NCBI GenBank assembly: GCA_002269645.1
Contig: NIVC01000887.1
Coordinates: 124,001 to 188,000 of the forward strand
Source: Macrostomum lignano
Taxonomy: Eukaryota
DNA: 64,000 nt
Direction: 5' to 3'
Numbering within the stretch: position 1 is the stretch's first letter; every line of letters begins with the position of its first letter. The notes under the pieces were generated by a model. The model made no database searches, was not told the origin of the DNA, and was given only the letters and a program-made list of their open reading frames with translations. The translations under genes were made by a program, and so were the position numbers. This document shows, piece after piece, positions 784 through 57,505 of this stretch.

Positions 784-2223
784 GCCAGTCCGCACAACAC
801 CAGCAAGCAGCAGCGGGAGCTCGAGCAGGCCGCCAGGCGGGCGGAGCGCGAGCGCAAGCGGCTGCAAAAAGAGGCGGAGAGGCTGGCGAAGGAGGCGGAG
901 CGGCAGAAGCGAGAGGAGGAGAAGCGGCTGAAGAAGGAGGAGGAGCTGCGCAAGAAGGAAGAGGAGCGACAGGCGAAGGAGGAAGAGAAAAAGGCCAAAG
1001 AGGAGGAGCGGGCCAAGCTGAAAGAAGCCAAGGAGGAGGAGAGGAAAGCGAAAGAAGAAGAGAAAGCCAAGCTGAAGGAGGCCAAGGAGGAGGAGAGAAA
1101 GGCGAAAGAGGAGGAAAGGAAGGCCAAGGAGGACGAGAAGCAAAAGAGGCAGGAAGAAGAGCGCAGGCAGAAGGAGAAGCAGGCGAGTCTTCTGGCCAGC
1201 TTCTTCATCAAGAAGCCGGCAGCCTCCAGCGGAGCCCAGTCGGATGTCGGGGGTTCGAGTCAGACTGAGGAGGCGGCAGCGCCGGAGGAGAAGCGGCGCT
1301 TCATGCCGTTTCCGCTGCGCCGAGACGCCCGGCTGTGCCCGGCGATTCGCAGGGAGCCGCTGACTGAGTCGGAGAGAAATACCCTTGAGCAGTTTTTGAG
1401 CAGCGATGCAGCGCCGCAGGCTGAGTCCTACCTCACTGAGCTAAAGCATCGCCGGGGTCGCAGCTGCCCTCAGACCTGGCCACTTAGCGAGTTCCTGCAA
1501 GGCGGCTCCGATCCTGACGTTGTCATGGTGACGGAGACGCAGTCGCTGCGCAAGTGCAAGCTGTTGCAGTTCTGCGAGAACCACAGGCCCGCCTACTTTG
1601 GCACCTGGGGCAGGCGGAGCAGCGCCATCTCCGGCCGGAACCCGCTGAGCAGAGACGCGGCCACCCTGGACTACGATGTTGACAGCGAGGCCGAGTGGGA
1701 GGAGGAGGGTGAGGGCGAGGATCTGGACAGGTCCGAGGGAGATCCAGAGGAGGCTGGGTCGGATGATGATGACGAGGATGAGGCTGCCTTTGTTGTCCCC
1801 CACGGCTACCTGAGCGATGACGAAGGCGAGAACCCTGCGGAAGCTGAGGAGGAGGCTGAGGATGCTGAAACCAGGAAGAAGCGGCAGCAGCTGAGGCAGC
1901 GCGCGTTCGAGGAGAGCCAGCAGAGAAAAGTGCAGCGGCTGAAGCCGATTTTGTTCGGCATCAGCTTTGCCGAGCTCGCGGAGATCGCCGAGGAGGCGGC
2001 CTTCTGCTGCCACGAGGCTCTGCCAGTCGACTGCGACCCGCCACCCAGCCAGCCTCCGACACCTGATGAGGCTGGACGCAAGCGCCCGGGATCGGCCAAG
2101 CGGGCTCGCGGCTCCTCAGCCTCCGCCGCATCTCCGGCCGAGTCTGGGAAGAAAATGCGGCGCCCCATCACCGACTTTTTCCAGTCTCCGTCTTCCGGGA
2201 AAAAACTGCCTGTACAAAATTGA
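784..2223 (+). CDS. CHAF1A: Chromatin assembly factor 1 subunit A (CAF-1 p150), final coding exon; upstream exons lie outside the window
   Basis: The frame is open from the acceptor ttccag|GCC (783/784) to TGA 2221-2223, in frame with ORF 1303-2223. It contains a K/E/R-rich coiled coil (KER), a PIP-like LLASFF, then KLLQFCENHRPAYFGTW, LDYDVDSEAEWEEEGEGEDL and FVVPHGYLSDDEG, which are hallmark CAF-1 p150 motifs. Confidence 0.93.
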   Translation, partial: ASPHNTSKQQRELEQAARRAERERKRLQKEAERLAKEAERQKREEEKRLKKEEELRKKEEERQAKEEEKKAKEEERAKLKEAKEEERKAKEEEKAKLKEAKEEERKAKEEERKAKEDEKQKRQEEERRQKEKQASLLASFFIKKPAASSGAQSDVGGSSQTEEAAAPEEKRRFMPFPLRRDARLCPAIRREPLTESERNTLEQFLSSDAAPQAESYLTELKHRRGRSCPQTWPLSEFLQGGSDPDVVMVTETQSLRKCKLLQFCENHRPAYFGTWGRRSSAISGRNPLSRDAATLDYDVDSEAEWEEEGEGEDLDRSEGDPEEAGSDDDDEDEAAFVVPHGYLSDDEGENPAEAEEEAEDAETRKKRQQLRQRAFEESQQRKVQRLKPILFGISFAELAEIAEEAAFCCHEALPVDCDPPPSQPPTPDEAGRKRPGSAKRARGSSASAASPAESGKKMRRPITDFFQSPSSGKKLPVQN

Positions 2224-13762: not shown

Positions 13763-15045
13763 TCGAATCTATGAGAACCCGAATCTATCAGAAACGAATC
13801 TATGAGAACCCGAATCTATCAGAAACGAATCTACGAGAACCCGAATCTATCAGAAACGAATCTATGAGAACCCGAATCTATCAGAAACGAATCTATGAGA
13901 ACCCGAATCTATCAGAAACGAATCTATGAGAACCTGAATAAATCAGAACCGAATCTATGAGAACCCGAATAAATCAGAACCGAATCTATGAGAACCCGAA
14001 TAAATCAGAACCGAATCTATGAGAACCCGAATAAATCAGAACCGAATCTATGAGAACCCGAATCTATCAGAAACGAATCTATGAGAACCCGAATCTATGA
14101 GAACCCAAATCAATCAGAAACGAATCTATGAGAACCCGAATCTATGAGAACCCAAATCAATCAGAAACGAATCTATCAGAACCCGAATCTATCAGAAACG
14201 AATCTATGAGAACCCGAATAAATCAGAATCGAATCTATGAGAACCCGAATCTATCAGAAACGAATCTATCAGAACCCGAATCTATCAGAATCGAATCTAT
14301 CAGAACCCGAATCTATCAGAAACGAATCTATGAGAACCCGAATCTATCAGAAACGAATCTATCAGAACCCGAATCTATCAGAAACGAATCTATGAGAACC
14401 CGAATAAATCAGAATCGAATCTATGAGAACCCAAATCAATCAGAAACGAATCTATCAGAACCCGAATCTATCAGAAACGAATCTATGAGAACCCAAATCA
14501 ATCAGAAACGAATCTATCAGAACCCGAATCTATCAGAAACGAATCTATGAGAACCCAAATCAATCAGAAACGAATCTATCAGAACCCGAATCTATCAGAA
14601 ACGAATCTATGAGAACCCAAATCAATCAGAAACGAATCTATGAGAACCCGAATCTATCAGAAACGAATCTATCAGAACCCGAATCTATCAGAAACGAATC
14701 TATGAGAACCCAAATCAATCAGAAACGAATCTATCAGAACCCGAATTTATCAGAAACGAATCTATGAGAACCCGAATAAATCAGAATCGAATCTATCAGA
14801 ACCCGAATCTATCAGAAACGAATCTATGAGAACCCGAATCTATGAGAACCAAAATCAATCAGAAACGAATCTATGAGAACCCGAATCTATGAGAACCCGA
14901 ATCTATGAGAACCCAAATCAATCAGAAACGAATCTATCAGAACCCGAATCTATCAGAAACGAATCTATGAGAACCCAAATCAATCAGAAACGAATCTATC
15001 AGAACCCGAATCTATCAGAAACGAATCTATGAGAAAACGAATCAA
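13763..15045. repeat. 15/16-bp alternating minisatellite in B55 intron 1
   Basis: Alternating gaatctatgagaaccc / gaatctatcagaaac units with aaatcaatc and gaataaatc variants. Confidence 0.96.
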
Positions 15046-15159
15046 TGAGAACTGCAGTATCTACCCAAAATCTCCAAAAAGCAGAATAAGACACATGCTT
15101 CTTCTGCTGAAGAAAAGCAGAATATAGGCAAATAAAGCTTTGATTATCCCAAAACTCAC

Positions 15160-16126
15160 CCTTCAACTGAAGATAGTCCCGGCTGAGTATGTAGCGACCG
15201 GAATGGGAGAATTTTATATCGCTAACAGATGAAATGATCTCGGAGAAAAACGACCGGCTAGAGGGATCGTCGGCCTCCTCGAAGATGCCAACGTGCTGGT
15301 CGCACAGGGCCCGCTGGCGCATGTCGCACATGCGGATTGAGCCTTTGCTGCTGGAGTACAGGAACAGATGACAATGGCTGGGATGGAACTCGGCAGCTGT
15401 GATCACCTCGGTGAGGTCCTCCATATTGTTGGGCTTGATGTCCACAATATTGTAACTCTGATCCGTGATGCCCAGGTGCCACAGGTTCACACGCAAGTCG
15501 TCGGCGCTAAGGAATGTCTCCTGGTCGCTATTAACAGAAATCGAATTGATATGGTAGGTGTGCGCGTTGGCGAATATTCTGCGAGGCGCGGCTTCGACTA
15601 TCAGCTCGGCGGGAACGTAGCGGGGCAGGCGCAGGGCTTGCGCGTTGGCATTGGGATCGGATTCCACAGCTTCCAGGGCCCGGTCCTTCTCGCTGACGCG
15701 CCACAGCTTTACGGTCTTATCGTTAGTTGATAGCAGAAAATTGGCCCGATAATGGCCGGGTAACCAGCGGATTTTATTAATTTTCTCCTCAATCTCCAGC
15801 GATTTCAGGTAGTCGAACTCCGGCTCGTGGCTAGTGAAAGTCGAATAGACATTGTACAGGCCGCTGTCCGACCGCTGGAACACCACCACCCGGCCGCCTT
15901 TGTCCCCGGTGGCCAATAGCTCGCCAGTGTGGTTGAACTCAACGCAGGAGATTATATCCTGCTCGTTGACCGCCTCCCAGGCTGTGCCTTTCACCTGGGA
16001 GAACTGCCAGCGCAGCGTCCGCTCGGCGGTGCCGGCCGCTGCCGCCGCCCTTTGCTGACCTGCGGACGAAGAATTTGACGAAGATGAACGATGGCGCCTC
16101 TTACTGTGCCGGTTAAACGGCCACAT
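15160..16126 (-). CDS. PPP2R2: PP2A regulatory subunit B55, exon 1 (ATG at 16126 assumed); full CDS 1419 nt, 472 aa
   Basis: [79 protein letters not shown]; donor AAG G|gtgag at 15160/15159. The frame is open a further 35 codons upstream, so the true start is uncertain. Confidence 0.95.
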
Positions 16127-19100
16127 CTGACGGCTGCCCAGTTGGATAGGGGGGCCTGACGACGGGTCATTTACTGCGCTGGAGCCGCGTCTAAGGAACT
16201 GCAGCCTTGACCGCGCATTGTCAAACTGCACCGCAAAGCTGGCAATTTGTTGCTATTGTGCTTCCACTTTCTATTTTGTTTTAATAAAGCGCCAGGGAAG
16301 CCCCGAGGAGCGCCGATTTATAGGCGGCTAAGTTGAGAGACGGACAGAGAAATATAAGGCGGCGGAGGTGGTGGGCAAAAGGAGGGAGGCGGTCGGGCGG
16401 GCGGACGACGCAGTTTTGAAGACTTCCTAAATTAACACTGGTGTCATGTGTGTGCAGCATACGTATTTCAGTGTCTAGCATGGCCTACAAGCAGTCGGCA
16501 ACTCTCTGCAGCTTGACGCACCCCAAACCCCACCCAACGTCTGTGTCTCTCTTTCCTGTGAACCCCTCGGCGACTCTGGTTGGCTCCGGCTTTGCATAGA
16601 CCGACGACAACACCCGATCCTCCTAGCGCTGCACTACCCTCCCTCAACCCCCGATCCATGCCGGGGGAGTGGTGAGAGGACTGTCTCCCCCCCTTCCGCT
16701 CACTGTCACTCAGTGACTTCTGTTCCGCCTTTGCTATTCAACTTTTTTATTGAAGCCATTATACGAGCTGGCGTTAAAAAAATATAGCGGGGGGGGGGTA
16801 ACGGGCGCGAGGGTAGAGAGACGAGGAAAATGGCGAAGAAAGGGAATAAGGGGGGATAGGGAAGGCCGTGCTAGATATTCGGCGACAGAATACATGCAGC
16901 AGCAACAGCGAGGGGGGCACAGTGGGTGGCCAGTCACTCAACAGCCGGCTGCACTCCCCCCCAGCCAGCACTTGGGCATAAAAACAGGGGCCTTTACTCC
17001 TTAGCCAATGGCAAATCGTGTGTCTAGAGCAAGAGGTTAAGCCAGGCCCTTAACTAGCAGTCAAAGGGGGGAGAGAAACATGCATGCAGGGTTTGTTTTC
17101 TTAGTTAAAGACCTAATTGTTGTCAGTTCACAGCTACTATAGGGAGGGAAAGCTATAGGAATTGAGTGAAAAATTCAATGGCTGAGCGCTACTTGCAACA
17201 GGCCCTGCCAAGAAAATGTCTGACAGCATGTTATAATATTCACTACATCTGACATACACAACAAGCAAATTAAAAACCAAATTTTAAGCCAGTTAACCTA
17301 CTAACAAATATTTTAGAATTCACTTTTTAAAACAGTAAACCCTTGCTATTAAAAACAATCACAAAAAATGTTGCCCAGATAAAAGATGTTAAACAGCAGT
17401 TATTACTTAAAAAACATAGCTTAATGTATAATAAACTTAATGATCCATAAATTTTGGACAAATGTTAAACCTAGCAGACATAACAATGAATAAAAAGGGA
17501 CACAAAAGGATACACACTTTTGAATGAATTACATAGGAAATTCTGATTCTTATTTCAACCAATGATATACAAGCCGTATATGTGTGAAATGGAAACAACA
17601 AAATTAAAAAATGTATCTTTTGCCTTTCTAAATTTAAACTTGGAAGTTCAGTATCTGCAGCAGCTAGGCTGGAAGATATTGTCATATCCAGTTTATAGCC
17701 TAAGATGTTTCTTTTGCAATTATCTTTTATTTTTCTAACCAAATTTTGGTCAAAAAATCCCCAGAAGTACAACTTAAATATGGGATCATAGGATTTTAAT
17801 CCAAAAATGACCAATTTTATAGATCTAATTCAGAATGGCCTATAATTTATTAGAAGGCTATTGTTATAGCTAGGGGTGACTATTTTGTTGAGTAAATATA
17901 ATTGCTTTTCTTTTTAACTTGTCATATTTTATAAAATTATAAAAAACTTCTCAATGACCAAAAATTTAGATATCTTTTTAATTATATACATATAAAAAGT
18001 TGGATAATACTAGAACTTTTAGGATTAAATATGATAAATATCATAATCAGGATTCAACTGAAGCTTTATATTGATATTGTAATAAGTAACTATCATCAAT
18101 TGTAATAGGCTTCATTTGGTATATAACTTTATTATGATTTCAAAGCTCCACCATTTTTTATACTGTAAAAAAATTATAAATGTGTTGTATCTTTTTTAGA
18201 CATTCTTTTTCTTCTAAATAATAAAGAAACTTTTAGTATAAATAAGAGCTATCTAAAAGCCAACTCAAATTAATTGTTCAATTGTTCCCTTATTCCTAAG
18301 CTTAAATTGTGCTTTAATATTGATTGAGTACCTCTCTAGTTATTCTATTTGGAGATAAAATCAACCAGCCTTAGGGCTAGTACTTGCTCTTATGTTACTT
18401 ATTTTGAGTACTAGATAACAACTAGAAACAGCCAAGATACTCTATTTTTAGAGACTTCTAGATTTAGTATCTAGGACAAAGAAATTGCCTTATAAGGCAG
18501 AACTCCTATCAAAGTGTAAGCATATCTAGACCAGGATCTGAGACTTTGCCTTAGGGCAAAAAACCTACCTAGAGTGTAAGAGTGACTCTTTGATCCCAGT
18601 AAATGCCCAGACTGAGAGAAAAACCCCCAATAAAAGAGAGCTAAGATATAAGATAAGATATAAATACAAGTATTATAAGACTACTCAGGCTTATAGTATG
18701 TAATATGGTACTGATTTGGAAACAAATATATATGATACACTACTAGTAAAAAGTATAATACCAAAAATACATCAAGATATTACATAAGAATAAAACTGTT
18801 ACAACTTAATGGCAACTTGGTAAGATTTTGAAAGGAGAACCAAGAGCCCTGTGACAGCCTAATGGCTTACTAGTAGGATTAAGATATAGAAGTTTATACC
18901 CCCATAACACAATGTTCCCCAATTGGAGAAGCAACAAAAAAATGAAATAAAATTTTTAAATAGCCTTATAACCTTATATAGCTTTATAGCCTTTATCTTT
19001 TAGCCTTGATTTCCTAACAATTCTTATGCCAACCTTAACATCTTGGAAATTTTTCTCTAAAAGCCTAACCTAAGCCTTGATATCTCAGTGATTCTTACAT

Positions 19101-33924: not shown

Positions 33925-34810
33925 AGTTAGAAAATAAGAGGAGAGAAGAGGAGAAAGGAGAGATAAGAGAGAGTAAAGGGAAGAGAGAAAAGATAAGGTT
34001 GTAGAGATGAGAGAGATGAAAGGAGAGATAAGAGAGGAGAGAAGAGATTACATAGACGAGAGGAGAGATGAGAGAAGAGGGAAGTATTGAGAGAGGGGAG
34101 AGTGAGAAGAGGGGAGAGTAGGGATTGCAAGATCCCGTTATTTGCGATCCCGGGATCCCGGAATTTGGCCAATCCCGGGATTGCAATCCCTAGGGGGAGA
34201 GAGAAGATAAAGTAGAGAGCAAAAGAGAAGTGAGAAAAGATAAGAGAGCTGAGAACAAAGACGAGAGAGAAGAGAGACGAGGGAAGAGACGAGAGAAGAG
34301 CGGAGGAATGAAATTAAAATGAAATTTAGGTCTTATAAAAGCGTCCTCTGCAGAGTGCATGCTTTGTCAGTGCATGGTAAAGAATTGCAAGGAAATACTG
34401 GGGGTTAGGAGGTAACAACAATCCTCCGTTTGGGAGGAAAATTCAGTGCGGGGGTCTTAAGTCAAGTATTTAAAGACTAAAAATAAAATTAATCTAACAA
34501 AATGATAGCAATTAGTGAGAAGGTAATAGCTTTACCTGTGCATCGCATATGAAGCTGAGCTGAGAGAAGCTAAATATAGAGGCCGAGAGTAGAGAGAGGC
34601 TGAGAGTAGACAGAGGCTGAGAGTGGATAGAGGCTGAGAGTAGAGAGAGGCTGAGAATAGAGAGAATAGAGGAGAAGGGAGATTAATGGAGAGGAGAGAG
34701 GAGGAAAGGGAGAAGAGAATGAAGAGGAAAAGGGAGATGAGAGGAAAGAGGTGAGGAGATGAAGAGGAGAGATGAGAGGAGAGGAGAGAGATGAGGAGAG
34801 GAGAGGACAA
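33925..34810. repeat. GA-rich low-complexity blocks
   Basis: Polypurine tracts at 33925-34310 and 34545-34810. Confidence 0.9.
34119..34193. mobile_element. 75-bp hAT-type mini-element
   Basis: 12-bp perfect TIR tagggattgcaa / ttgcaatcccta, internal atcccggga repeats, flanked by 8-bp ggggagag on both sides (one extra g on the right). Confidence 0.7.
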
Positions 34811-35463
34811 GAGAGAATATGAAGATTCAAAGAACCCACGGGCTTGTGGGCCACATGTGGCCAACCTGGGGGTTCGCCGACCCCTATTTTAGTTTAGCCT
34901 TTTTACTTTGGTTCCGACACCTCTGAGGAGAGGGCAGAGATGATCGGGAGAGAGAAAAGATGGGAGACGAGAGGGCAGAGAGCCGGGGCTGTTGCCCCCA
35001 GGACCCCGGGTCCTGCACGCAATGGCGTGGTGAACTATCTGTGCAGTATGAGACTGGTATGGCCCTTATCCCAGCCAGCGATGCTCACACCTGCCTCCCC
35101 TGGCGGGCTGATAGCTCAAGAGACTCTGTATCCTGATTTTCACCTTGCAAGGCGCACTTCGAAGGGTACTCGTCCCGTGGGTGTTAAGGCAGGCTTTTGG
35201 GCCTTGCCGAGCTGATTCGTTGGCGCCGAGTCCTGGTGTGACCATATAAACGCACCCTCTAATGTCCCAGTGTAACTACGTGCTGATGGACGCTTGGCCA
35301 GGGAGTAGTCTGGTCGCTAACGGTTCCCCTTGCGCTTTTGGGTCGCCCGCAGGGTGGTATTTTGCTTTTTGGGGGCCTGCCGCTTGGTTTGGGGTTGCGG
35401 CCTTGCGGCCTTGCGGCTCTTTGCCTGTGTTCTGCAGGAAGTCCCACATTTTTACTTCCAGCC

Positions 35464-36950
35464 AATGGCTTCTAACCGAAGTACCCAACCGGCTGTGGAT
35501 GACACAGTGCCTCCGGCCTCGGCTGGGGCCGTGGACTCCGCGGCCATACCACCTGCTACCATCGGGGACGCCTCGGCGAGACCCGTGGAGCCAACTCTGA
35601 GCGGTGCCTCCGAGAAGACACCTGCTACTCCAGCTGCCAAGCAGCTGAGCACCACCTCTGGAGCTGCCCCGCCGTCGACTTAACAAGGCGAGGCGGGCCA
35701 AGGAGGGCGGAAGCCTAACCGGCGCCAGGGGCCAACGGCCCGCGGCAGCGGAAGTTTCCCAATCTGGGGCGGTGGCGGAAGAGGGCCTCGAGCTCACTGA
35801 AGTCCCTGCCCAGGATAGGGAGGCCGATGCAGCCGGGAGGGTGGACAGCCCACCTGAAGAATGCTCCACCGACCCCCGGGCCTCCGACGCTGATGCGGCA
35901 AAGAGGCAACCGGCGGTTGTCATTCTGGGGAAGGACGCGCGCTTGTCTCCCGACTAGCTGAAGCAGGTGAGAGGTGCCGTTGATGGCCTCCTGTGGAAGC
36001 AAACTCTGAAGGGCACGCCTCAGAACATTCATTCGAATGCGACGAGGGACACGTGCCTTCTCATTTGGCCCAGTGATGCTGACTCGGGTCGGCGGCTCCT
36101 TGAGCTGCTGCCCGAGCAGAGCTGGGACCTCAACCTAGCCTTCTGCAGAGAGGACGAGCGCCCCCGGACCAAGAGGCATCGAATCTGGGTTCCGGCCAGG
36201 AGCATCGTTACCTCTGCTGACGAGCTCCGGAAAGGACTGCTAGCAGTCAACCGGGAGCTTCCCGCCGCGGGCCTAGTGGTGCATGACACCCTTAAGCGCC
36301 TGTCGGACGCCTCGATGAGGCGCTATCCACACGGCAGCTTCATCAACGTTGGCCTTTTTAAAGCTGCGCATCCGCTCCTACGAGGCCGACCCTCCCCGTG
36401 GCAGTGAGCAGGGCGGGCGGAATGCCGAAGCAGCCGGGGCCGAGGCGCGAGCTTCTGCTCAGGCGGCCAAAGCAAACCGCCCCGCCCGGCAGCACGGCCG
36501 CGCGGGTAAAGCCGAACGCGCTGCTGAGGGCGGAGGGGACCGACGCCCGGCGCGCAGCACCAAGCGGCGCGGCCTGTACCAGCGCGCAGCGAGGCGGTCC
36601 GCACCGCTAAAATCACCTAGCTGAGGAGAGAGGTCGCCTGGACGCCTAGGCGCACCAGCTCATCCAGGGAGGGTGGGGACGTCCCAGCTGGGCCCAACCC
36701 CTCGGGGCAGGGCCGGCTGGAGACGGACCCGCCTGCCCAGGCGGCTGGCTGCTCCAGGGCATTGGGCCAGTCTGAAGCGGAGGACCCCGTGGCCGGTGGG
36801 CGAAGGGCGGCGAACGCTGCCTACTGCCTTCCGACCCATCGGGGGCCTTTTGCTGAAGAGGAGCCCATGGACACCGGCGACCCCGACCCGAAGCTGGTGA
36901 GCGCCGAGGAGGAGGAGGAACTCCTGGCATCAACGCCCGATCTGCACTGA
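35464..36950 (+). mobile_element. Degenerate ORF1 of a LOA/R1-type non-LTR retrotransposon (DUF4780-like region)
   Basis: GC-rich, with stops and frameshifts; RIWVPARSIVTSADELRKGLLAVNRELPAAGLVVHD resembles the LOA ORF1 domain; ends EEEEELLASTPDLH*, overlapping the ORF2 start. Confidence 0.55.
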
Positions 36951-36963
36951 TGCCAGCGGCTAC

Positions 36964-37567
36964 CGGTGTCTGCAGATCAACACCCAGCACTGCGTGGCGG
37001 CGTCAGTCAACCTGATGCGCACGACAGAGCAACAGCTTCCGGCCCTGGTCTTCGTGCAGGAGCCCTGGATGACTAAAGGTTGTTGTGCTTTTGGCTTTAG
37101 CCTTTAGCAATTGTCAGTCTAGCGGTCTGTTGACCTATGACGCGTCTATCATTTATTTCATAACTCAATAGCATGGTTCAATTCATCAACGCAGTCGCGT
37201 AACAAAAATGTCTATCGCAAAGCCATCAACCCACAACAAAGGTAAGCCAAATAATGTGCCATCTAGCTACCACTGTTTTTGCATGGCGGACTCTCAGCCT
37301 CGCCCAAGATCTCTGGTCTTTGCTGCAAAAGCTTTTGAGGCATGGATGAGACCTGATCTCTCGACTGGGGACATCTGTGTTGTTCAAATCAATAACCTCA
37401 TTCCAAATAAACCTGTGCTGGTAGCATCTGCCTATTTCCCAGGCGATGCCCCAGTAGTCTGCGGCGCACTAGTCAACCTCATTGACTACGCCGCGTCCCG
37501 TCGGTTCGAGCTGCTCATTGCAGGGGATGTGAACGCACACCACCTGCATTGGGGCAGCAAGAAGTGA
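36964..37567 (+). mobile_element. AP endonuclease N-terminus of LINE ORF2 (LOA/R1-type), interrupted and 3'-truncated
   Basis: RCLQINTQHCVAAS..VFVQEPWMTKG [insertion] KPNN..RPRS..VASAYFP..IAGDVNAHHLHWGS; no RT follows. Confidence 0.88.
37081..37238. mobile_element. 158-bp insertion with TG..CA ends, short inverted termini and 5-bp TSD (solo-LTR-like)
   Basis: aaggt|TGTTGTG...CACAACA|aaggt; removing it plus one TSD restores the endonuclease frame QEPWMTKGKPNN. Confidence 0.8.
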
Positions 37568-37574
37568 GGAAGAT

Positions 37575-38035
37575 GGCCTTTTTCACGGAAAATTCCGGCG
37601 CAAAAGGGGGTTAGACATGCGCCGCGCCGGCGCGTTCCGGCTCAATAGCAGGCAAAGGAGAAAAATCGGGTGCAATATGGCGCAAGACAAAAAAATTGGC
37701 ACTATTTAATGCAAGACAAAAAACTTTCGATGAGACAATATTTTCTCTGACAGAAAATTAGCATGTAATTTCTTTTTATTAGCACTTTTTGTTTGCCGGT
37801 ATATTGACAGCTTTTTTAATTAATTTACGTTAACATTGTATTTTCTATGAAACAGATTCAAATACAAGTTTTACCAGTATTTTTCTAACGGTAAGGGGTA
37901 AATTGACTGATTTTCGCATTTTTTTTAAAAGTTTCGGTACATGGCGCGAGCAAATTTTTTTGATAGGAATAGTTCCGGCGCATGGCGCAATCAAACTCTT
38001 TTTATAGGATTCCTTCCGGCGTAGGCGTGCCATGA
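37575..38035. mobile_element. Probable DNA-transposon relic at the LINE truncation point
   Basis: Repeated ccggcgc/tggcgc motifs with AT-rich spacers; similar in style to 27590-27730. Confidence 0.35.
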
Positions 38036-39862
38036 TCCTGACTAGGCCCTGACTAGACTAGACTAGGTTTTATAAGGGACCCTTTTTAGCTGATAAGTTG
38101 GTTGCTTTTTGCCTTTTTGTCTATACCACTTATAATTATAGCAGAAAATTGATCCATGCAAACATTTAAAACCTTATTACAAGTTTAAAAACCCTAGAAA
38201 GTTTGAAATTTATACTTCAAAATGAAATTCTTTATCTTTTTTTCTACCTAACACTAACTCTTAAGTGATTCTATCAAGTGCATGCCATTATGCCAAGTAT
38301 ACATGCACACCATACTTTGGATTGTGTATTAGTGTAGGCCTATGCCAGGTTTAATGCCAGAAAAAATGACAAGACCTTGCTTATATGCTAGGTCCTAGGA
38401 TTGTGCACCAATACAAAAAATTGGTTTTTGACATAGGCCTAATGTAGGGCCTATCTGCTGTGTCATGTGTAGGGCCTGTACTAGGCTTAGAATATACCCT
38501 GATTTATGCTGAAAAATGATGGTAAGACCCTTATTGTATGCTTGGGAATCCTAGCATATATGTAGCCTTTTGAACTATGGCATGCACATGTTTTTAAGAG
38601 TGATACATGCCAACTACTATGCATGTCTAACTCTTGGTAGGCCCTATGCAAGGCCAATGCCTACTTAAATTTTTGGGCATAAACTACATGATCCAGAGTA
38701 TGGTGATGATTATAGGTTTCAAGATATAATGCTGAATTGGCATATGAAAAAATACCATTTATACTTATTTTTGGTCCTAAAATAACAAGTCTATATCATA
38801 TTTATAGTTTATAGAAAAATATTTTGGAACTTGTCTTTTTTAGAAGCAAATAAGATAAATTTTAATAGGTATGATGGTCATTGCCACAGAAATATGTCTA
38901 TATTAAGACAAAAAAGTTGCTTTTGAATTCTTGTGAATTTTGGTTATTTGATTGTCTAAAGTGGTTTTTTAAGGATAACATATAACTACTATAAAACATA
39001 AGGAATGGAATTATTTGTTTGTCTATAATCTTTTATTCAACTTGTTTAACTATGACAATTGTAGTGTGATAGAGCCATGAATGTTAGTAGTCAGTGAAGT
39101 TTGTAAAATTAGAGTACAAAACCAAATTGATTGGGGCTATATATCATGGCAAGGACCTATATAGAGCTAAAGCCTAGGGCTATCTATAAGCTACTTTATT
39201 TTAATCATTGCTTATTCGCATGTTACTTGAGCGCTAATGACTGTTTATTGATCATATCAAATTGCATTCTGAATTGCATTGAATTATCATAGCACATTCT
39301 GGATCCGCCTAGAGAGTGATAGCAGGTCTTATAATAGACAATGGAATAGATTACAATGATTATACTTTTCAAGGCCCACAACTCCACCTTTTAAATTTTG
39401 CAATTTTGGGCAAATGATAAAAGTAACTATAACTATATTATTAATGCTAAGTGATTCATAATCTAATTAGTACTATGTGCAGATTACTTGTTTTTCAGAT
39501 GGGCATTTTTGTGATGTACCTTGGCTGGCTTGGCTGAATTGTTGAGTAATTACAATTTTTAAACTAATTAGAAAAAACTAGCCAGATAGTTCTCAAGAAA
39601 ATCAAAGACAGACAAACAGAGAGATCAGCACAAAATTTATATATAGATATACCAAAGAGCCTTATAGTTATGGCTTGCATTTTTGTCATTAGCTTTTAAA
39701 AGAAAGTCTTTTAATTACATCTTTTTCAGCTTTTAAAATTAGTTTTGACTGAAAATACCAAGCTTATAGCATGCTTTCTAGTCATAAAATTTTTAGATTG
39801 ATGTAAGTTAAATTTGTTTACATTTAATTTTAACCATTGTACCTTTCTGTTTAAATTTATTT

Positions 39863-41870
39863 ATGATGACTTCTAAACAGCAAAGGTAAGTTTACCATGT
39901 TCATAAAAAAATTTTGCAATGTTAAATGATTCATTTTTAAAGTACTATATCACTCTATCACTCTATTTTAATTGTAGCAAAAAATTGTCCTCAACTAGGG
40001 CTTCGCCTGTACGCACAAGGACATTGGGGCCAAGCAAGGTTTCAGCCAGGTATTTGTTTATCTTAAATGTTTGTTTTTTAATCTTATTCAATCTCTCTTA
40101 CTCATGTCCCTGCTGAACTCTGCAGTGATCTGTCTAACTTAAGTACACTTGCCGGACGCAAGCTATCGCCCATTGCTGCCAAGACTTCTCGGCGTCGCAC
40201 TGTTGCCATGACAACGTCTGCTGCTCGCAGCCAGGAAATTACTATGACGTCATCTTCCGATTCCGGCACGAATTTGACTTCTAAAACAACAGTGATGAAG
40301 TCAGCCTCAAGGCAAATGCGCATAGAAGAAGAGCAGCCGCTTTCGTAAGCTTTTGTATTCCTAATATTTATGCTTTTTCAACAAGAATGTGTCCTGAGAT
40401 TAGTAAACTATAATATATTAAGTGCAAAAGCAGCTGCTAGAAAGACCCCTGAAAAACGGCAACCCCTAAAATATAGCCCGACTGGCACTTCTGTCTTCAA
40501 AACCCTATCATAAAAGCAATCCTTAGGCTCCACTCAAGAATGCAGAAGTAAAAATAGCGATTCGAATATCAATCATATGGCATATTGGAACTACCCCACC
40601 AGAATCGCATACCCAAAATACTCTTACCCCACCAGAATCGCATACCCAAAATACTCTTACCCCACCAGAATCACATACCCAAAATACCCCACCAGAATGG
40701 CATACCCAAAATACCCCACCAGAATCGTATACCCAAAATACCCCCCCCCAGAATCTTATACCCAAAATACCCCACCAAAATCGTATACCCGAAATACCCC
40801 ACCAGAATGGCATACCCAAAATACCCCACCAGAATCGCATACTTAAATACCCCACCAGAATCAAGTCTATTGCTAATTTTCTAATTTTCCCACCTCTCTC
40901 ACCCAGCTCGCAGCCGATAGTCGCTGCCGCCTTAGCCAAGCCAAGGAAGCGCAAAATTAGCGTTAGTCCTGTGCGCAAGGCGGTCGACGCTGCCGCCTCC
41001 CCAGCTAAACGCCGTCGCCCGGCCGCAACTGCGCGTAAATCTCCGAAGTCGTTTTTTGGCAGCCCAGCCAAAGTTAAAACTGTTAAAAAGTCGCCAACCA
41101 AGGCTGCCGTCTCTCCGCCACCAAAGCGAAGCCGCCAATCTGTGGCCAAGACTTCAAAGGCTGCCACCTCTCCGCCGCCAAAGCGAAGCCGCCAATCTGT
41201 GGCCAAGACTTCAACTGCTGCCGCCTCTCCGCCGCCAAAGCGAAGCCGCCAATCTGTGGCCAAGACTTCAGAGGCTGCCACCTCTCCGCCGCCAAAGCGA
41301 AGCCGCCAATCTGTGGCCAAGACTTCAACTGCTGCCGCCTCTCCGCCGCCAAAGCGAAGCCGCAAATCTGTGGCCAAGACTTCAAAGGGCGCCGCCAACC
41401 CAGTCAAGGAGGCCACAATAATTAAAAAGTCGCCATCAAAGTCTGTCGCAATGTCTCGCAGTCGCCAGGCTGTGGCGAAAACTTCAAAGGGCGCCGCCAC
41501 CGCCTCCAGCTCGGCTGTGAAAGCCAAGTCGACCTCGAAGCGGCAGTCGATTGCGGCCAAGTCTAAGCCTTCGCAGAGACAATCTACCAGCAGCTCCAGG
41601 AAGTCCAGCGCTCGCTCAGTCCAGTTCATCGCTTCGTCGAGTTCCGGTTCCCAGTTTGACAGTCCGCCGGCTGGCGTTTCCGGCGGCGGCGTTGTGCGGC
41701 GTCAGCAGACGCCGGCGGCCCGCCGCAAGCTGACAACTGTGGTTGAGTGTCACGAGATGACGCTGGACTCCAGCAGCACTGTTCGCGAGGCCGCCTCGTC
41801 GACAAGCGCTGCCAATGATTCTTTGGAGTCAGTACAGACTGGCAACAAGAGTTGGTGTTCAGTCATGTGA
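39863..41870 (+). CDS. Uncharacterised ~425-aa basic, low-complexity protein with 5x19-aa SPPPKRSRQSVAKTS repeats and C-terminal CaaX (CSVM); exons 39863-39885, 39978-40049, 40126-40344, 40907-41870
   Basis: All three introns are GT-AG and phase 2; the joined CDS is 1278 nt and stop-free, ending TGT TCA GTC ATG TGA. K/R/S/A-rich with KPRKRK and PAKRRR clusters. The first exon (ATG ATG ACT...) is the least certain. Confidence 0.72.
40592..40860. repeat. 27-33-bp intronic minisatellite
   Basis: Unit ccccaccagaatcgcatacccaaaata(ctctta), ~9 copies, in intron 3 of the CaaX gene. Confidence 0.92.
41111..41390 (+). repeat. 57-bp coding tandem repeat (5 copies)
   Basis: ctctccgcc(a/g)ccaaagcgaagccgccaatctgtggccaagacttca.. 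at 57-bp spacing (41111, 41168...). Confidence 0.95.
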
Positions 41871-42220
41871 CTTCATCACATTATAGTGCTAAATGACATC
41901 CTTTTTTAAACAGCATCAACAGTTTTTCTCCCCAGTCCGTGACTTTTTAGGATTTGGGATTCTTTATTTATTAGCTAATTCTTGTATTTGATCGTATTAT
42001 CATCCATTTTGTTTTGTGTCATCTAACTGGTCCGTAACTGGTCATGGGAAAGGAATTCCATGGAAACCAAATATTGTGTGTAAACTTTGCTTAACATAAT
42101 AAGCCCTGCTTTCTTTATCTTTATACCGAGACTCAAACCGAGACTCGTTTTAAAAAACCGTTTGTCTATGTTAATTAGTTCTTAATAGAATGGAATTCTA
42201 TTATATCACCTAGCACTCGA

Positions 42221-42795
42221 ATGCAATTGTCTATGGCAATCAGCTGATAATAGAATGCAATTGTCTATGGCAATCAGCTGATAATAGAATGCAATTGTCT
42301 ATGGCAATCAGCTGATAATAGAATGCAATTGTCTATGGCAATCAGCTGATAATAGAATGCAATTGTCTATGGCAGTCAGCTGATAATAGAATGCAATTGT
42401 CTATGGCAATCAGCTGACAATATAATGGCATTGTCTATGGCAATCAGCTGACAATAGAATGCAATTGTCTATGGCAATCAGCTGACAATAGAATGCAATT
42501 GTCTATGGCAATCAGCTGACAATATAATGGCATTGTCTATGGCAATCAGCTGACAATAGAATGCAATTGTCTATGGCAGTCAGCTGACAATAGAATGCAA
42601 TTGTCTATGGCAATCAGCTGGCAATAGAATGCAATTGTCTATGGCAATCAGCTGACAATATAATGGCATTGTCTATGGCAATCAGCTGACAATAGAATGC
42701 AATTGTCTATGGCAGTCAGCTGACAATAGAATGCAATTGTCTATGGCAATCAGCTGACAATAGAATGCAATTGTCTATGGCAATCAGCTGACAAT
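42221..42795. repeat. 34-bp minisatellite (~17 copies)
   Basis: Unit aatgcaattgtctatggcaatcagctga(t/c)aatag. Confidence 0.97.
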
Positions 42796-43399: not shown

Positions 43400-43662
43400 A
43401 ATTCCCTGAATAATCCAAGCCTCTCGAATTCCCTGTGTAATCCAAGCCTCTTTAATTCCCTGTGTAATCCAAGCCTCTTTAATTCCCTGTGTAGTCCAAG
43501 TCTCTCGAATTCCCTGTGTAATCCAAGCCTCTTTAGTTCCCTATGTAGTCCAAGTCTCTCTAATTCCCTGGGTAATCCAAGCCTCTTTAGTTCCCTATGT
43601 AGTCCAAGTCTCTCTAATTCCCTGGGTAATCCAAGCCTCTTTAGTTCCCTATGTAGTCCAAT
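43400..43662. repeat. 27-bp minisatellite (~10 copies) just upstream of MRPL17
   Basis: Unit aattccctgtgtaatccaagcctcttt. Confidence 0.93.
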
Positions 43663-43884
43663 CCTCTAATTTCCTGAGTAGCTTGTCCTAATATTCTTAT
43701 TAGCGGATGCAATAAGCGGACTTACTGATCTGTATAGATCTGTATACCATCTAACTGGCTACATTAGCAATCCATTGCTGTCATTAAAGCCTTCTCCAAC
43801 ACTGACAAACCAGCCCGCAGCCAGCTGACATTGCCAGACAAATTAACAGGCCCGGAAGCAAAGCAACCGTCTTAGCTTTCAACC

Positions 43885-44406
43885 ATGTCTGCAACTGCGG
43901 CAGCAAAATCTGCCGCTACCAGGATGCGGTTCAATTTTCCAAGAAAGCAGGTGCGAATCGACGCTCCAATGGGCTTTGGCACCGGCCAACTTGGCCGCCT
44001 GCTGCTAATCAGAGACTCAGTTTCCGCCCTGGTTGCTAAGGAGCGATTAGAGTTCAACGATCGCCCTGTGGCGGTGAACACTCAGCAGTACTCTGAGCTG
44101 CTGCTGCACAAAGCCACGCTGCTCGGGCCGGACAATCCGGCTATGCGCGACCTGGCATTCTTCTGGTTGGAGAACCAGCAGCTAGTGCGAAAGATGTTCG
44201 ACGAGCTGGTGCCCCGTCTTGCTGGCAGCTCAAAGCCGTACACCCGGCTGCATCGGGTCGGATCGGCCGGCCTGCAGGTGCTGGAGATTCGGGACAATCA
44301 GCTGCCGCCGCTGGTGCCGCGAGTTGAACCGGGCGTCAGGTCCCAATACCTGATTAACTATTTGCTAAAGTGCGCCAGGGAGGATCCGGACTTCAAGCCG
44401 GTTTGA
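43885..44406 (+). CDS. MRPL17: Mitochondrial ribosomal protein L17 (bL17m), intronless
   Basis: MGFG..RLLLIRDSVSALVAKERLE..YSELLL..FWLENQQLVRKMFDELVPR..YTRL..VLEIRDNQLPPL..LINYLL aligns by eye with metazoan MRPL17 (LVRHERIE, FWLTEKDLIPKLFQVLAPR, YTRML, LPPL); A/R-rich N-terminus. Confidence 0.88.
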   Translation: MSATAAAKSAATRMRFNFPRKQVRIDAPMGFGTGQLGRLLLIRDSVSALVAKERLEFNDRPVAVNTQQYSELLLHKATLLGPDNPAMRDLAFFWLENQQLVRKMFDELVPRLAGSSKPYTRLHRVGSAGLQVLEIRDNQLPPLVPRVEPGVRSQYLINYLLKCAREDPDFKPV

Positions 44407-52975: not shown

Positions 52976-53958
52976 ATGTATTTGATTATTTAGTTGTATT
53001 TATTCAATAACCTTAACAAAACTTAACATGAAAAAGTCCTGCCCAATCAAAGCTAATAAAGCGGGTTTCGTCTGTCTGTCCAAAAAATGCTTTCCTGACT
53101 GATTTGAACGGCGCATCCTGCCGCTATCCGCTTAGAGTAACAACAATACGTATTAACTACAATATTAATTCGGGCTGGATGGCGTGAGCCAATTACTGTT
53201 GTGAGCAGGAGAATAGCTTTGCTCTGCGAATCTATTGTCAAAGCAGTCTTACGCAGAGGGAGGTTGGTTACGCGTAGAGGTTATAATGGGCCGAGCTCGA
53301 ACTCGAGCAGCTGTACTCGATCTTTACCTGCTATTGTCCAAGCGCTCGCTCTTCGTGCTGCACTGCGAGTCTGCCTGCGCCTTGAGGCGGTGGGCTCGCC
53401 ATCTATTTTGTTAGCTATCTTTTGCTATCTGTATCCATTTCGAGCGCTGAGCTGAGTGCATGGGTCCTGCGCGTTCCCGATGAAAGATCTTACAATGCAA
53501 GCGAACCAAGCCTCAAGGCTTTTCACAGAAATATTACTACAGACCGCGGATGGGTTCCTAACACTTAGTAATCCTTCTTGCCAGATACTCGTACAGGTAC
53601 AGTATAACCGTAGCTTGTGCGAGCCTGTGTGTAGATCAGCATCAGGGTCCGGCAAACTCTATGATTTTCAACCCCGAGGCCAGATAAAGAATTAGCTATA
53701 GCTCCAGGCTGCAGACCAGATAGGAGAGAAAAGAGGAGAGAAGAGATCTATTTGAAAGATGGCTATTGAAAAGTTTCAAAGAACCGAGAGCCGGATAGGG
53801 AGCTGGCTTCGCGGGCCTTCTCGGGTTGTCTGATCAACGGGCGTGTAGAGGTTTTTGCGGTCGTCTCTTCAGATAAATTTGTACACAAAAGCAGAACTAT
53901 TTCACTACTGCATGAATCGTAATCTGTGAGAATGCTTACTGGCATAGTTTCTAATTAC

Positions 53959-55590
53959 CTTTCTGTGCGGATAATGGCCTGTGTTGGGACAGTCGGGGTC
54001 CCGCAAATACGATCCAACGGAGTTCCAATTGCTGTCCTTGAGCAGACCCGCTCTCTTTGACTGCATCGGGCAGCAGCTCACTGGTATCACCTGTCGGATG
54101 CCCTTGTAGGTTGGTGAGGACTTGTGCCACAGGGTGGTGTTGCCGGTGATGTCCCGGTAGCCGTTTGTTCCGCAGCATTCGAACTGGATGAATTTATTGT
54201 TCAACAATTGCTTGGCTGAGGTATTACATTGTCGACCGGTTTTATCAAACTCTAAATTCACTTCTGAGGAATATGTACGCAAATACGCTTGCAAATTTTC
54301 TGAGATTTTGGTAAGGATTTTGCATGATACTTCTGACCTGACCTTCATTGACCTCCCCTGGGTGGTTCCCAAATCGTCCCCTCCAACCTCAATGCAGACC
54401 CACCCACAAAAAATTAACATAATTGAACCCCCAACTTGCCTGCACTTGCATGTGGTTAATCATCATGGTGACTTTGGCCTCGGTAGTAGAATTCTGCTTC
54501 AGCGCCAGGCTCAGCGGTTGGAAGTAGTTCCTGTCCAGAATCATCAGCTTGGTTCTCATGATCAACCCGCTGTTGACGCCTACGTCATGGCTGATGCCGA
54601 AGCTGTCCATGAAGCCAATGCTGATAAAGCCCAGAATGCTGGGCAGCGCCATCAGTATTGGACTCTAAAGATTTCATGAGTTATTACTGACCAAAATTGA
54701 AAATGCAATTCGAGTGTTTCTAAGCAACGATCGATCGCCTTCGTATGGTCGAAATTTCCTCGATCTCAGATTGTACTTTTAAATTTTGCTTAATTAGAGC
54801 TTCTTGATTATTAAGATACTATTTTTAGAGGTTAATGCTAAATGCTAAATACTGCTTAAACTAATTTCTGGTTAAAAAATCCGTTAAAAGCAGAGTCTCC
54901 ATATTAATCGCTGGAGCTGAGCTGATTGCAGCCGAGTCAGATAGCTGTAGTAGCCATGAACTCGCCATAAACTACTCTTCTGTTGCAACTGAAGGGAAGA
55001 AGGACATTTTTGTTTCAATTTTTCAGCGCAAGGAAATGCCGGTTGTACATTCTGGGTACGTCCTATACTCCGTGGTTTGGACTTTCGGTTTCTCAATACA
55101 GTTTGTTTGTTAGACTCTACATGTATAAGAAGCAGAAACATGGTTTCAGACATAGACACCACGTGGCATTGCCTGTCTGCTGCCAAAATTTCGTATATTA
55201 GTGAGGCTTCAAGTCAAAAGTGAAGCTACGAGCCCTAAAGGTAGTATTTTTCAGTCCTGAAACAACTAGCTCCCCTGACCCAAGATCATGACTTACAATC
55301 AGGCGCTCCTCGTTGTTCCTCGGTTCGCAACAGATGAGCAGCCCGCTAGCGATGGAGAAAACGCTTAAAACCACGTTGATTCCGCCCACTACAAGAAGAG
55401 TTTGCGGAGCCCATGCCAGTTTCAAACCGCCCACCGGGTGCAGATCCTGCATTAGCAGCTGCATCAGCTCGAACAGCGGGCCGTGAGCGACGCTGACAAC
55501 CCAGATTGACAGGCCGAGCAGGGCCAGGGCGGCTATCAGGCCCGCCGAGACGATGCCGATAAACAGGTTCTTTATCCATTGCTGAGACAT
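53959..55590 (-). CDS. Tetraspanin-like gene, copy 1 (exons 55590-55297, 54664-54440, 54183-53959; TM4 exon not resolved)
   Basis: Three hydrophobic segments, then NHMQVQ|FECCGTNG..PVSCC..DCP, the tetraspanin EC2 signature; the exons are phase 0 and stop-free, and intron 2 has a GC donor. Confidence 0.72.
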
Positions 55591-57220: not shown

Positions 57221-57505
57221 AATAATAATAATAATTGATTACACCTGCCCCAATGGGCAGATGTGTAACCGACAGCTCAGCCGCAGCTATTGCGCGGCGC
57301 ATCTGAAGGCTGCGTACGGCTGTTCAGTCCAAGGACTGGGGGGGGGGGTCGCCACACACACCCTCAATTACCCCAACTGAACTGAAACAATGCAGAGTTA
57401 AGTATCTTACTCAAGGACACAAATTGTTCCCAGTGGGATAGGGAATCGAACCCCCAACCTTCCAGTCGTGAGTCCGACGCTCTAACCACTAAGCTACAAC
57501 CCCCC
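57221..57505 (-). mobile_element. tRNA-derived SINE with core-like domain and (TTA)n tail
   Basis: Minus strand: A-box TAGCTTAGTGG, B-box GGTTCGATTCC, then gtgtccttgagtaagatacttaactc, ending in ttattattattag; absent from duplication unit 1. Confidence 0.85.

Follow-up and report, generated by a model that had tools for sequence, protein, structure and literature searches.

A stretch of 64,000 nucleotides from Macrostomum lignano (contig NIVC01000887.1, positions 124,001 to 188,000; the window hereafter) carries at 39863-41870 of its forward strand a real-looking protein-coding gene, the product of which is strongly basic and ends in a CaaX box. We propose, with a probability that we put at about 40%, that this product may be a farnesylated, cyclin-dependent kinase (CDK)-regulated, DNA-binding disordered protein of the inner nuclear membrane, similar in kind to Kugelkern and to the tail of B-type lamins. 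In such a protein the clusters of lysine and arginine (KPRKRK, PAKRRR and five KRSR cores) would serve importin-dependent entry into the nucleus, farnesyltransferase would modify the terminal CSVM at C422, and removal of -SVM together with methylation would lead to insertion of the C-terminus in the inner nuclear membrane. The body, rich in S, A, K, R and P, would bind DNA or chromatin electrostatically, as the C-terminal tail of histone H1 does, and inner-nuclear-membrane proteins would offer a parallel through their basic nucleoplasmic domains, which are known to bind DNA directly when the envelope reassembles. Peripheral chromatin would in this way be linked to the membrane, and growth or a change in shape of the nuclear membrane might be promoted, as it is by other proteins that combine a nuclear localization signal (NLS) with a CaaX box. 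Finally, phosphorylation of the clustered S/T-P sites by CDK would lower the charge of the protein and allow the release of chromatin in mitosis.

The gene consists of four exons (Table 1) which, in positions 39500-42300 of the window and the open reading frames (ORFs) listed there, join in frame to 1278 nucleotides (nt), or 425 codons and a TGA stop. A preliminary description of this DNA had reported a cleanly spliced ORF of four exons and about 425 amino acids (aa), and both its coordinates and its length proved exact. All three introns have GT...AG borders, a stop codon is present in frame 5' of the ATG, and no strong internal splice donor was found in exon 4. Intron 3 must be spliced, since reading through it leads immediately to a TAA. 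Half of this intron is made up of a 27-nt minisatellite (TACCCCACCAGAATCGCATACCCAAAA, 40592-40862, 9.6 copies), which gives rise to spurious ORFs on both strands. In three protein models of M. lignano (P0001, P0002 and P0004), independently deposited and 86-99% identical, the junctions between exons 1 to 4 are identical to those of the gene; the N-terminus MMTSKQQS is common to the gene and all three models, and the junction of exons 3 and 4 (EEEQPLS/SQPIVAAAL) is found in deposited models. At the level of sequence the deposited models corroborate the 5' two-thirds of the gene model. In UniRef they appear as A0A1I8HHC7 (n=2) and A0A1I8GLD5, of 239 aa, 98-99% identical and named "Neurofilament triplet H1-like protein", and as UniRef100_A0A1I8HPS3 (P0002), of 234 aa and named "PP1-binding domain-containing protein". 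When A0A1I8HPS3 is compared with the window, two stretches (40990-41060 and 41270-41300) are seen to differ and to resemble another frame, e.g. ...LPPLRRQSEAAN; these off-frame stretches are comparable to the window ORF 41056-41421. The copy may thus contain indel errors, or its frameshifts may be real.

Codon usage was scored as log-odds, for which three ORFs of the window with Pfam support served as the training set: those of a B55-like WD40 protein, CAF1A and MRPL17. The forward frame of exon 4 scored +0.13 bits per codon, and the part that follows the repeats +0.15 when taken alone; a positive score combined with zero stops was found in this frame only, the other five containing 2-11 stops. 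An antisense ORF of 368 aa, which overlaps exon 4 and intron 3, was considered as the true gene and rejected: its codon score is lower, it crosses the minisatellite of intron 3, its Pfam matches are sub-threshold and of the kind expected by chance, and the GT-AG introns as well as the deposited models lie on the forward strand. We take this ORF for an artefact created by GC-rich periodic repeats. Also rejected was the view that the gene is an ORF of a long interspersed nuclear element (LINE) fragment located upstream, as AT-rich non-coding DNA lies between the two and the gene has introns. The fragment itself (ORF 37208-37567, forward strand, within a GC-rich block at about 34000-38000) has an endonuclease-reverse-transcriptase match (Exo_endo_phos_2) with E = 3.7e-5, below the Pfam cut-off, and is probably a truncated non-LTR (long terminal repeat) retrotransposon, located upstream of the gene at a distance of about 2.3 kb. 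No paralogue of the gene was found inside the window.

Table 1. Features of the gene and of the overlapping antisense ORF (positions in the window; a slash marks an exon border)
Feature	Position	Strand	Remarks
Exon 1	39863-39885	+	23 nt; start ATGATG; donor AAG/GTAAGT
Exon 2	39978-40049	+	72 nt; acceptor TTGTAG/; donor CAG/GTATTT; SPVR at aa 17
Exon 3	40126-40344	+	219 nt; acceptor CTGCAG/; donor TTC/GTAAGC; S/T-rich, mildly basic
Intron 3	40345-40906	+	562 nt; contains a minisatellite
Exon 4	40907-41870	+	964 nt including TGA; acceptor ACCCAG/; 320 codons; basic, predicted disordered body and C-terminus
KPRKRK (aa 116-121)	40938-40955	+	NLS-like; motif match
PAKRRR (aa 137-142)	41001-41018	+	NLS-like; motif match
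57-nt tandem array	41100-41396	+	in frame; five near-identical units at 41100-41384, then degenerate units
RSVQF (aa 341-345)	41613-41627	+	weak match to the PP1-docking pattern [RK]x0-1[VI]{P}[FW]
CSVM (aa 422-425) and TGA	41856-41870	+	CaaX box; ends a neutral to slightly acidic tail of 50 residues
Antisense ORF	40523-41629	-	368 aa

The CaaX box is the feature on which the proposed membrane anchoring depends. The protein ends in GNKSWCSVM, directly followed by the stop codon, so that the WCSVM ending reported earlier is indeed present, and human Rheb, which is farnesylated, has the same CSVM box (PMC7255682). The tetrapeptide agrees with the substrate pattern of farnesyltransferase, in which a cysteine at position -4 and an aliphatic a2 residue are combined with M, S, Q, A or C as X at a true C-terminus. 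For a random C-terminus of this composition, the chance of ending in C-x-[aliphatic]-[MSQAC] is about 7e-4. Cysteine occurs just twice in the protein, as C386 in VECHEM (41742-41759) and as C422 in KSWCSVM (41847-41867), and one of the two occupies the -4 position. The CaaX box makes lamins lipophilic and promotes their association with the nuclear membrane, and a chimera of GFP, an NLS and a CaaX box, like lamin tails, is reported to be sufficient for both nuclear-membrane association and growth (PMC2947476). Mammalian Ras CaaX tags have been tried in M. lignano embryos; prenylation tags were functional in most of the animals tested, and the accessible part of that preprint gives no result specific to Macrostomum for the Ras tags (bioRxiv 10.1101/2024.11.12.623055).

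The rest of the protein is dominated by serine (20.7%), alanine (14.4%), lysine (11.1%), threonine (9.2%), arginine (8.9%) and proline (7.8%), in agreement with the K/R/S/A-rich composition noticed before, and has an isoelectric point (pI) of about 12. The net charge is positive in every 25-aa block through aa 375; over the final 50 residues it falls to neutral or slightly acidic. Neither a Pfam search (zero matches at E<=10 for the full model and none for the deposited copies) nor a sequence search of the PDB (zero matches) returned a domain. In single-sequence AlphaFold2 predictions exon 4 had a mean pLDDT (predicted local distance difference test) of 45.8 and no helices; the N-terminal 239 aa reached 51.3 and contained two low-confidence helices of about 10 residues. 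These results support the view that the protein is an intrinsically disordered polycation with no predicted fold, and the claim that it has no globular domain has held up. Nor is there a hydrophobic segment: the maximal Kyte-Doolittle value over 19 residues is 0.37, and therefore the protein has no signal peptide or transmembrane segment.

Within the basic body the NLS-like clusters KPRKRK and PAKRRR, of which the former is so labelled on the general form of classical monopartite signals, could both be located in the translated protein, as could the SPVR, SPAK, SPTK and SPSK motifs that had been listed along with them. There are six [ST]Px[KR] sites, namely SPVR and SPAK twice each, SPTK and SPSK, and beyond these nine further S/T-P sites. 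In composition-preserving shuffles, run a second time with the young repeat collapsed, the six [ST]Px[KR] sites compare with an expectation of 1.96 (P = 0.013) for the full protein and 1.17 (P = 0.002) for the collapsed one, an excess of about 3-5-fold, and SP dipeptides are likewise enriched (14 observed, 6.9 expected, P = 0.002). The five 19-aa repeats mentioned in the preliminary description correspond to the 57-nt array, for which Tandem Repeats Finder gave 5.2 copies with a 92% match. The unit reads xAAxSPPPKRSRQSVAKTS, with the basic core KRSR in each copy. Since only four codons vary among the five units, the expansion of the repeat is young; the same four codons are too few for a ratio of nonsynonymous to synonymous change (dN/dS), and no selection signal was obtained from the units. 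The RSVQF sequence, in the C-terminal third, is not significant in the shuffles (P about 0.14-0.16) and possibly due to chance.

No relative of the protein was found outside M. lignano. With the full protein as query, a word-indexed search of 5.8 billion proteins returned only two fragments, both from M. lignano, the C-terminal 157 aa had zero matches in the same collection, and look-ups of exact proteins (P0001, P0002 and the exon-4 ORF) gave no recorded contig. When 1.84 billion cluster representatives were searched exhaustively with an HMMER profile, the only matches were the M. lignano copies and a single spurious repeat protein (P0003). On these searches the gene appears to be lineage-restricted and, so far, confined to Macrostomum, and the earlier statement that it could not be assigned to a named family stands, as the Pfam, PDB and HMMER searches were all empty in this respect.

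Although the protein, as judged from sequence, belongs to none of the families of H1, protamines, lamins, Kugelkern and Ki-67/RepoMan, it does share features with each of them. In function the closest would be Kugelkern and the NLS-CaaX tail of B-type lamins, in composition the C-terminal tail of H1. Kugelkern, in which a coiled coil is combined with an NLS and a CaaX box, was in 2010 described as the sole farnesylated nuclear protein then known apart from lamins (PMC2947476). Like Kugelkern, the M. lignano protein is a lineage-restricted, non-lamin protein with NLS-like clusters and a C-terminal CaaX box and with neither a lamin rod nor an Ig fold, and like Kugelkern it is predicted to be anchored in the nuclear membrane by farnesyl (PMC2947476). 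Unlike Kugelkern, it is not predicted to have an N-terminal coiled coil, it is far more basic, rich in S/T-P and provided with the tandem 19-aa repeat, and the profile search against 1.84 billion representatives showed no sequence similarity to Kugelkern, its conserved C-terminal domain included. With the tail of B-type lamins it has in common NLS-like clusters placed before a CxxM box, a non-basic spacer and candidate CDK sites (PMC2947476 and general knowledge); the intermediate-filament rod, the Ig domain of the lamin tail (Pfam) and filament-forming helices (AlphaFold2) are all missing. Lamin tails are likewise non-basic just before their CaaX box, and the CDK sites of lamins regulate their behaviour in mitosis.

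The "histone H1/protamine-like" label proposed earlier was found to be right for composition only. Like the H1 C-terminal tail and the protamine-like proteins of invertebrates, the protein would be a disordered polycation rich in K, A, S and P with S/TPxK motifs, but the winged-helix globular domain of the linker histones H1/H5 is missing (Pfam at E<=10, AlphaFold2). Moreover, serine dominates, K and R together amount to only about 20%, and the protein ends in a CaaX box, an ending that to our knowledge has not been described for H1 or protamines. Protamines are small and dominated by R or by K and R, whereas the M. lignano protein has 425 aa with arginine and lysine at the values given above. 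From Rheb and K-Ras4B, whose C-termini come to mind as Rheb also has CSVM, it differs by having no GTPase domain; the lipidation signal alone is shared. What would be new is a non-lamin NLS and CaaX protein with a body resembling the H1 tail and with no detectable homologues, although this novelty depends on the CaaX box being used. A further step, to regard the protein as a Macrostomum-specific, lamin-independent and farnesylated polycation that staples chromatin to the inner nuclear membrane and is switched off by CDK, and thus as a second, independently evolved protein of the Kugelkern type with a DNA-binding body, may be considered, but we hold it to be doubtful.

The names attached to the deposited copies were also followed up. 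Ki-67 and RepoMan (CDCA2) are large, basic, disordered proteins of the chromosome periphery that are regulated by CDK and PP1, and the M. lignano protein recalls them by its basic and predicted disordered nature, by the RVxF-like RSVQF and by the database name of A0A1I8HPS3. An identity as a PP1-binding domain protein was rejected, as Pfam PP1_bind (PF15276) was found neither in the window protein nor in A0A1I8HPS3. BLASTP against the crystallised PP1-binding peptides of Ki-67 and RepoMan (PDB 5j28_C and 5inb_B) gave no similarity beyond KRRR; the patterns used for comparison were KR[RK]RV[ST]FG...LP.N.PL and the KiR-SLiM KR.RV[ST]FG...F.E.LP.N.PL, and the local KRKISV is without the obligatory aromatic residue (F/W) of the PP1-docking motif. 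Neurofilament heavy chain, the name carried by two of the deposited copies, was rejected: it is defined by an intermediate-filament rod with KSP repeats, and there is no Pfam Filament match. On this sequence comparison the database names reflect composition and chance, that of neurofilament being due to an S/P/K-rich composition only.

Very basic disordered proteins are often nucleolar or RNA-binding. It is possible, if in our view less likely than a farnesylated protein of the inner nuclear membrane, that the gene encodes a soluble protein of the nucleus, nucleolus or chromosome coat (H1-tail-like, Ki-67-like or sperm-basic-protein-like) which binds nucleic acids electrostatically under S/T-P phospho-regulation and whose CSVM is fortuitous or unused. 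The composition, the pI and the predicted disorder, together with the S/T-P enrichment, would be explained by such a protein; no evidence of CaaX conservation was found in the collections searched, and the PP1-docking-like RSVQF and the name given to A0A1I8HPS3 point in the same direction. However, a CaaX-like end is improbable by chance, CSVM is a proven substrate of farnesyltransferase (PMC7255682) which on a tail predicted to be disordered should be accessible, and the PP1 connection is weakened by the non-significance of RSVQF and the lack of similarity to the Ki-67/RepoMan peptides. A farnesylated protein acting outside the nucleus was considered as well: after the manner of K-Ras4B or Rheb, the polycation and the farnesyl would together bind acidic phospholipids, either in the plasma membrane or in endomembranes. 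Rheb is directed to endomembranes by its CSVM box (PMC7255682), and polybasic tags with a CaaX box reach the plasma membrane in many animals (bioRxiv 10.1101/2024.11.12.623055). In the M. lignano protein, by contrast, the 50 residues before the CaaX box are not polybasic, several strong clusters resembling classical NLSs are present, and no other membrane-targeting feature is found, so that an extranuclear location seems very unlikely.

A different objection is that the ORF might be a young orphan with little or no function that arose in a minisatellite-rich region, or that its C-terminus is mis-modelled, in which case the CaaX box would have no meaning. No homologue was found outside M. lignano among 1.84 billion representatives, minisatellites abound in the window, the 57-nt array in the coding region is itself very young, the antisense ORF is likewise open, the codon-usage signal is modest and for exons 1-3 slightly negative (-0.09), though still highest in the annotated frame, no canonical AATAAA was found 3' of the stop codon, and the C-terminal part occurs in zero deposited proteins. 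The four exons keep their frame throughout and are separated by clean GT-AG introns, the junctions are identical in three independently deposited copies, 320 codons run without a stop in one frame against 2-11 stops in each of the other five, and the motif enrichments would be unexpected for random sequence; all this speaks against such an origin, which we consider improbable.

Several observations weigh against the proposal of a farnesylated protein at the inner nuclear membrane. The excess of K[KR]x[KR] cores (six against 1.8 expected) is due to the repeat alone and with the repeat collapsed becomes non-significant (two against 1.3). The only hint of structure is a weak beta-pairing predicted by AlphaFold2 between aa 384-389 and 419-424 (pLDDT about 60-69), two short strands that contain one cysteine each and bring the two side by side; if this pairing is real, the CaaX cysteine could have a different role. 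Cxxx ends frequently go unprenylated. In addition, every deposited model ends within the 19-aa repeat array, which leaves the 3' end of the exon with no independent support, and because the C-terminal search and the exon-4 look-up were empty, none of the deposited proteins within reach includes the CaaX-bearing end. The searched collections held no orthologue or paralogue whose C-terminus would allow the CaaX box to be compared. Literature searches with peptide strings, and for Macrostomum with farnesyl or protamine, returned nothing on the gene, its expression or its localisation, nor any family of disordered farnesylated chromatin tethers or any such architecture; and for the role in sperm or germline nuclei that had been suggested, there is nothing here for or against, the literature being silent on the gene.

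The surroundings of the gene are rich in repeats, with at least a dozen large minisatellites (periods 4-57) in the window. A 34-nt satellite of 17 copies (42219-42795, 95% match) begins about 350 nt past the stop codon, and a 27/54-nt array (43400-43680) lies just upstream of the next gene, located at 43885-44406 on the forward strand, which contains a Ribosomal_L17 domain (E = 6e-8) and probably encodes mitochondrial ribosomal protein L17. Other coding pieces were found at 1303-2223 (forward), 14999-16231 (reverse) and 53905-54420 (reverse), and comprise a dimerisation domain of CAF-1 subunit A (E = 9e-26), a PP2A-B55-like WD40 protein and a tetraspanin fragment. At 57434-57503 (reverse) an Rfam tRNA match of 35.2 bits (gathering score 29), not called by ARAGORN, may be a degenerate tRNA-like sequence or one related to a short interspersed nuclear element (SINE).

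The evidence is at the level of motifs and comes from a single copy of an orphan gene, but the architecture is unusual. Should the CaaX box be unused, the gene would be one more orphan encoding a basic disordered protein in a repeat-rich genome. Non-lamin farnesylated nuclear proteins are very few and have strong effects on the size of the nucleus, on its shape and on ageing-like phenotypes. If the proposal of a farnesylated protein at the inner nuclear membrane is true, the gene would supply a naturally occurring minimal example in which an NLS and a farnesyl anchor are joined to a disordered polycation that binds DNA, and would indicate that tethers between chromatin and membrane can arise de novo within a lineage. 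M. lignano is transgenic as well as transparent, and in this animal it would also offer a simple tool for the attachment of chromatin to the nuclear envelope and its regulation in mitosis.

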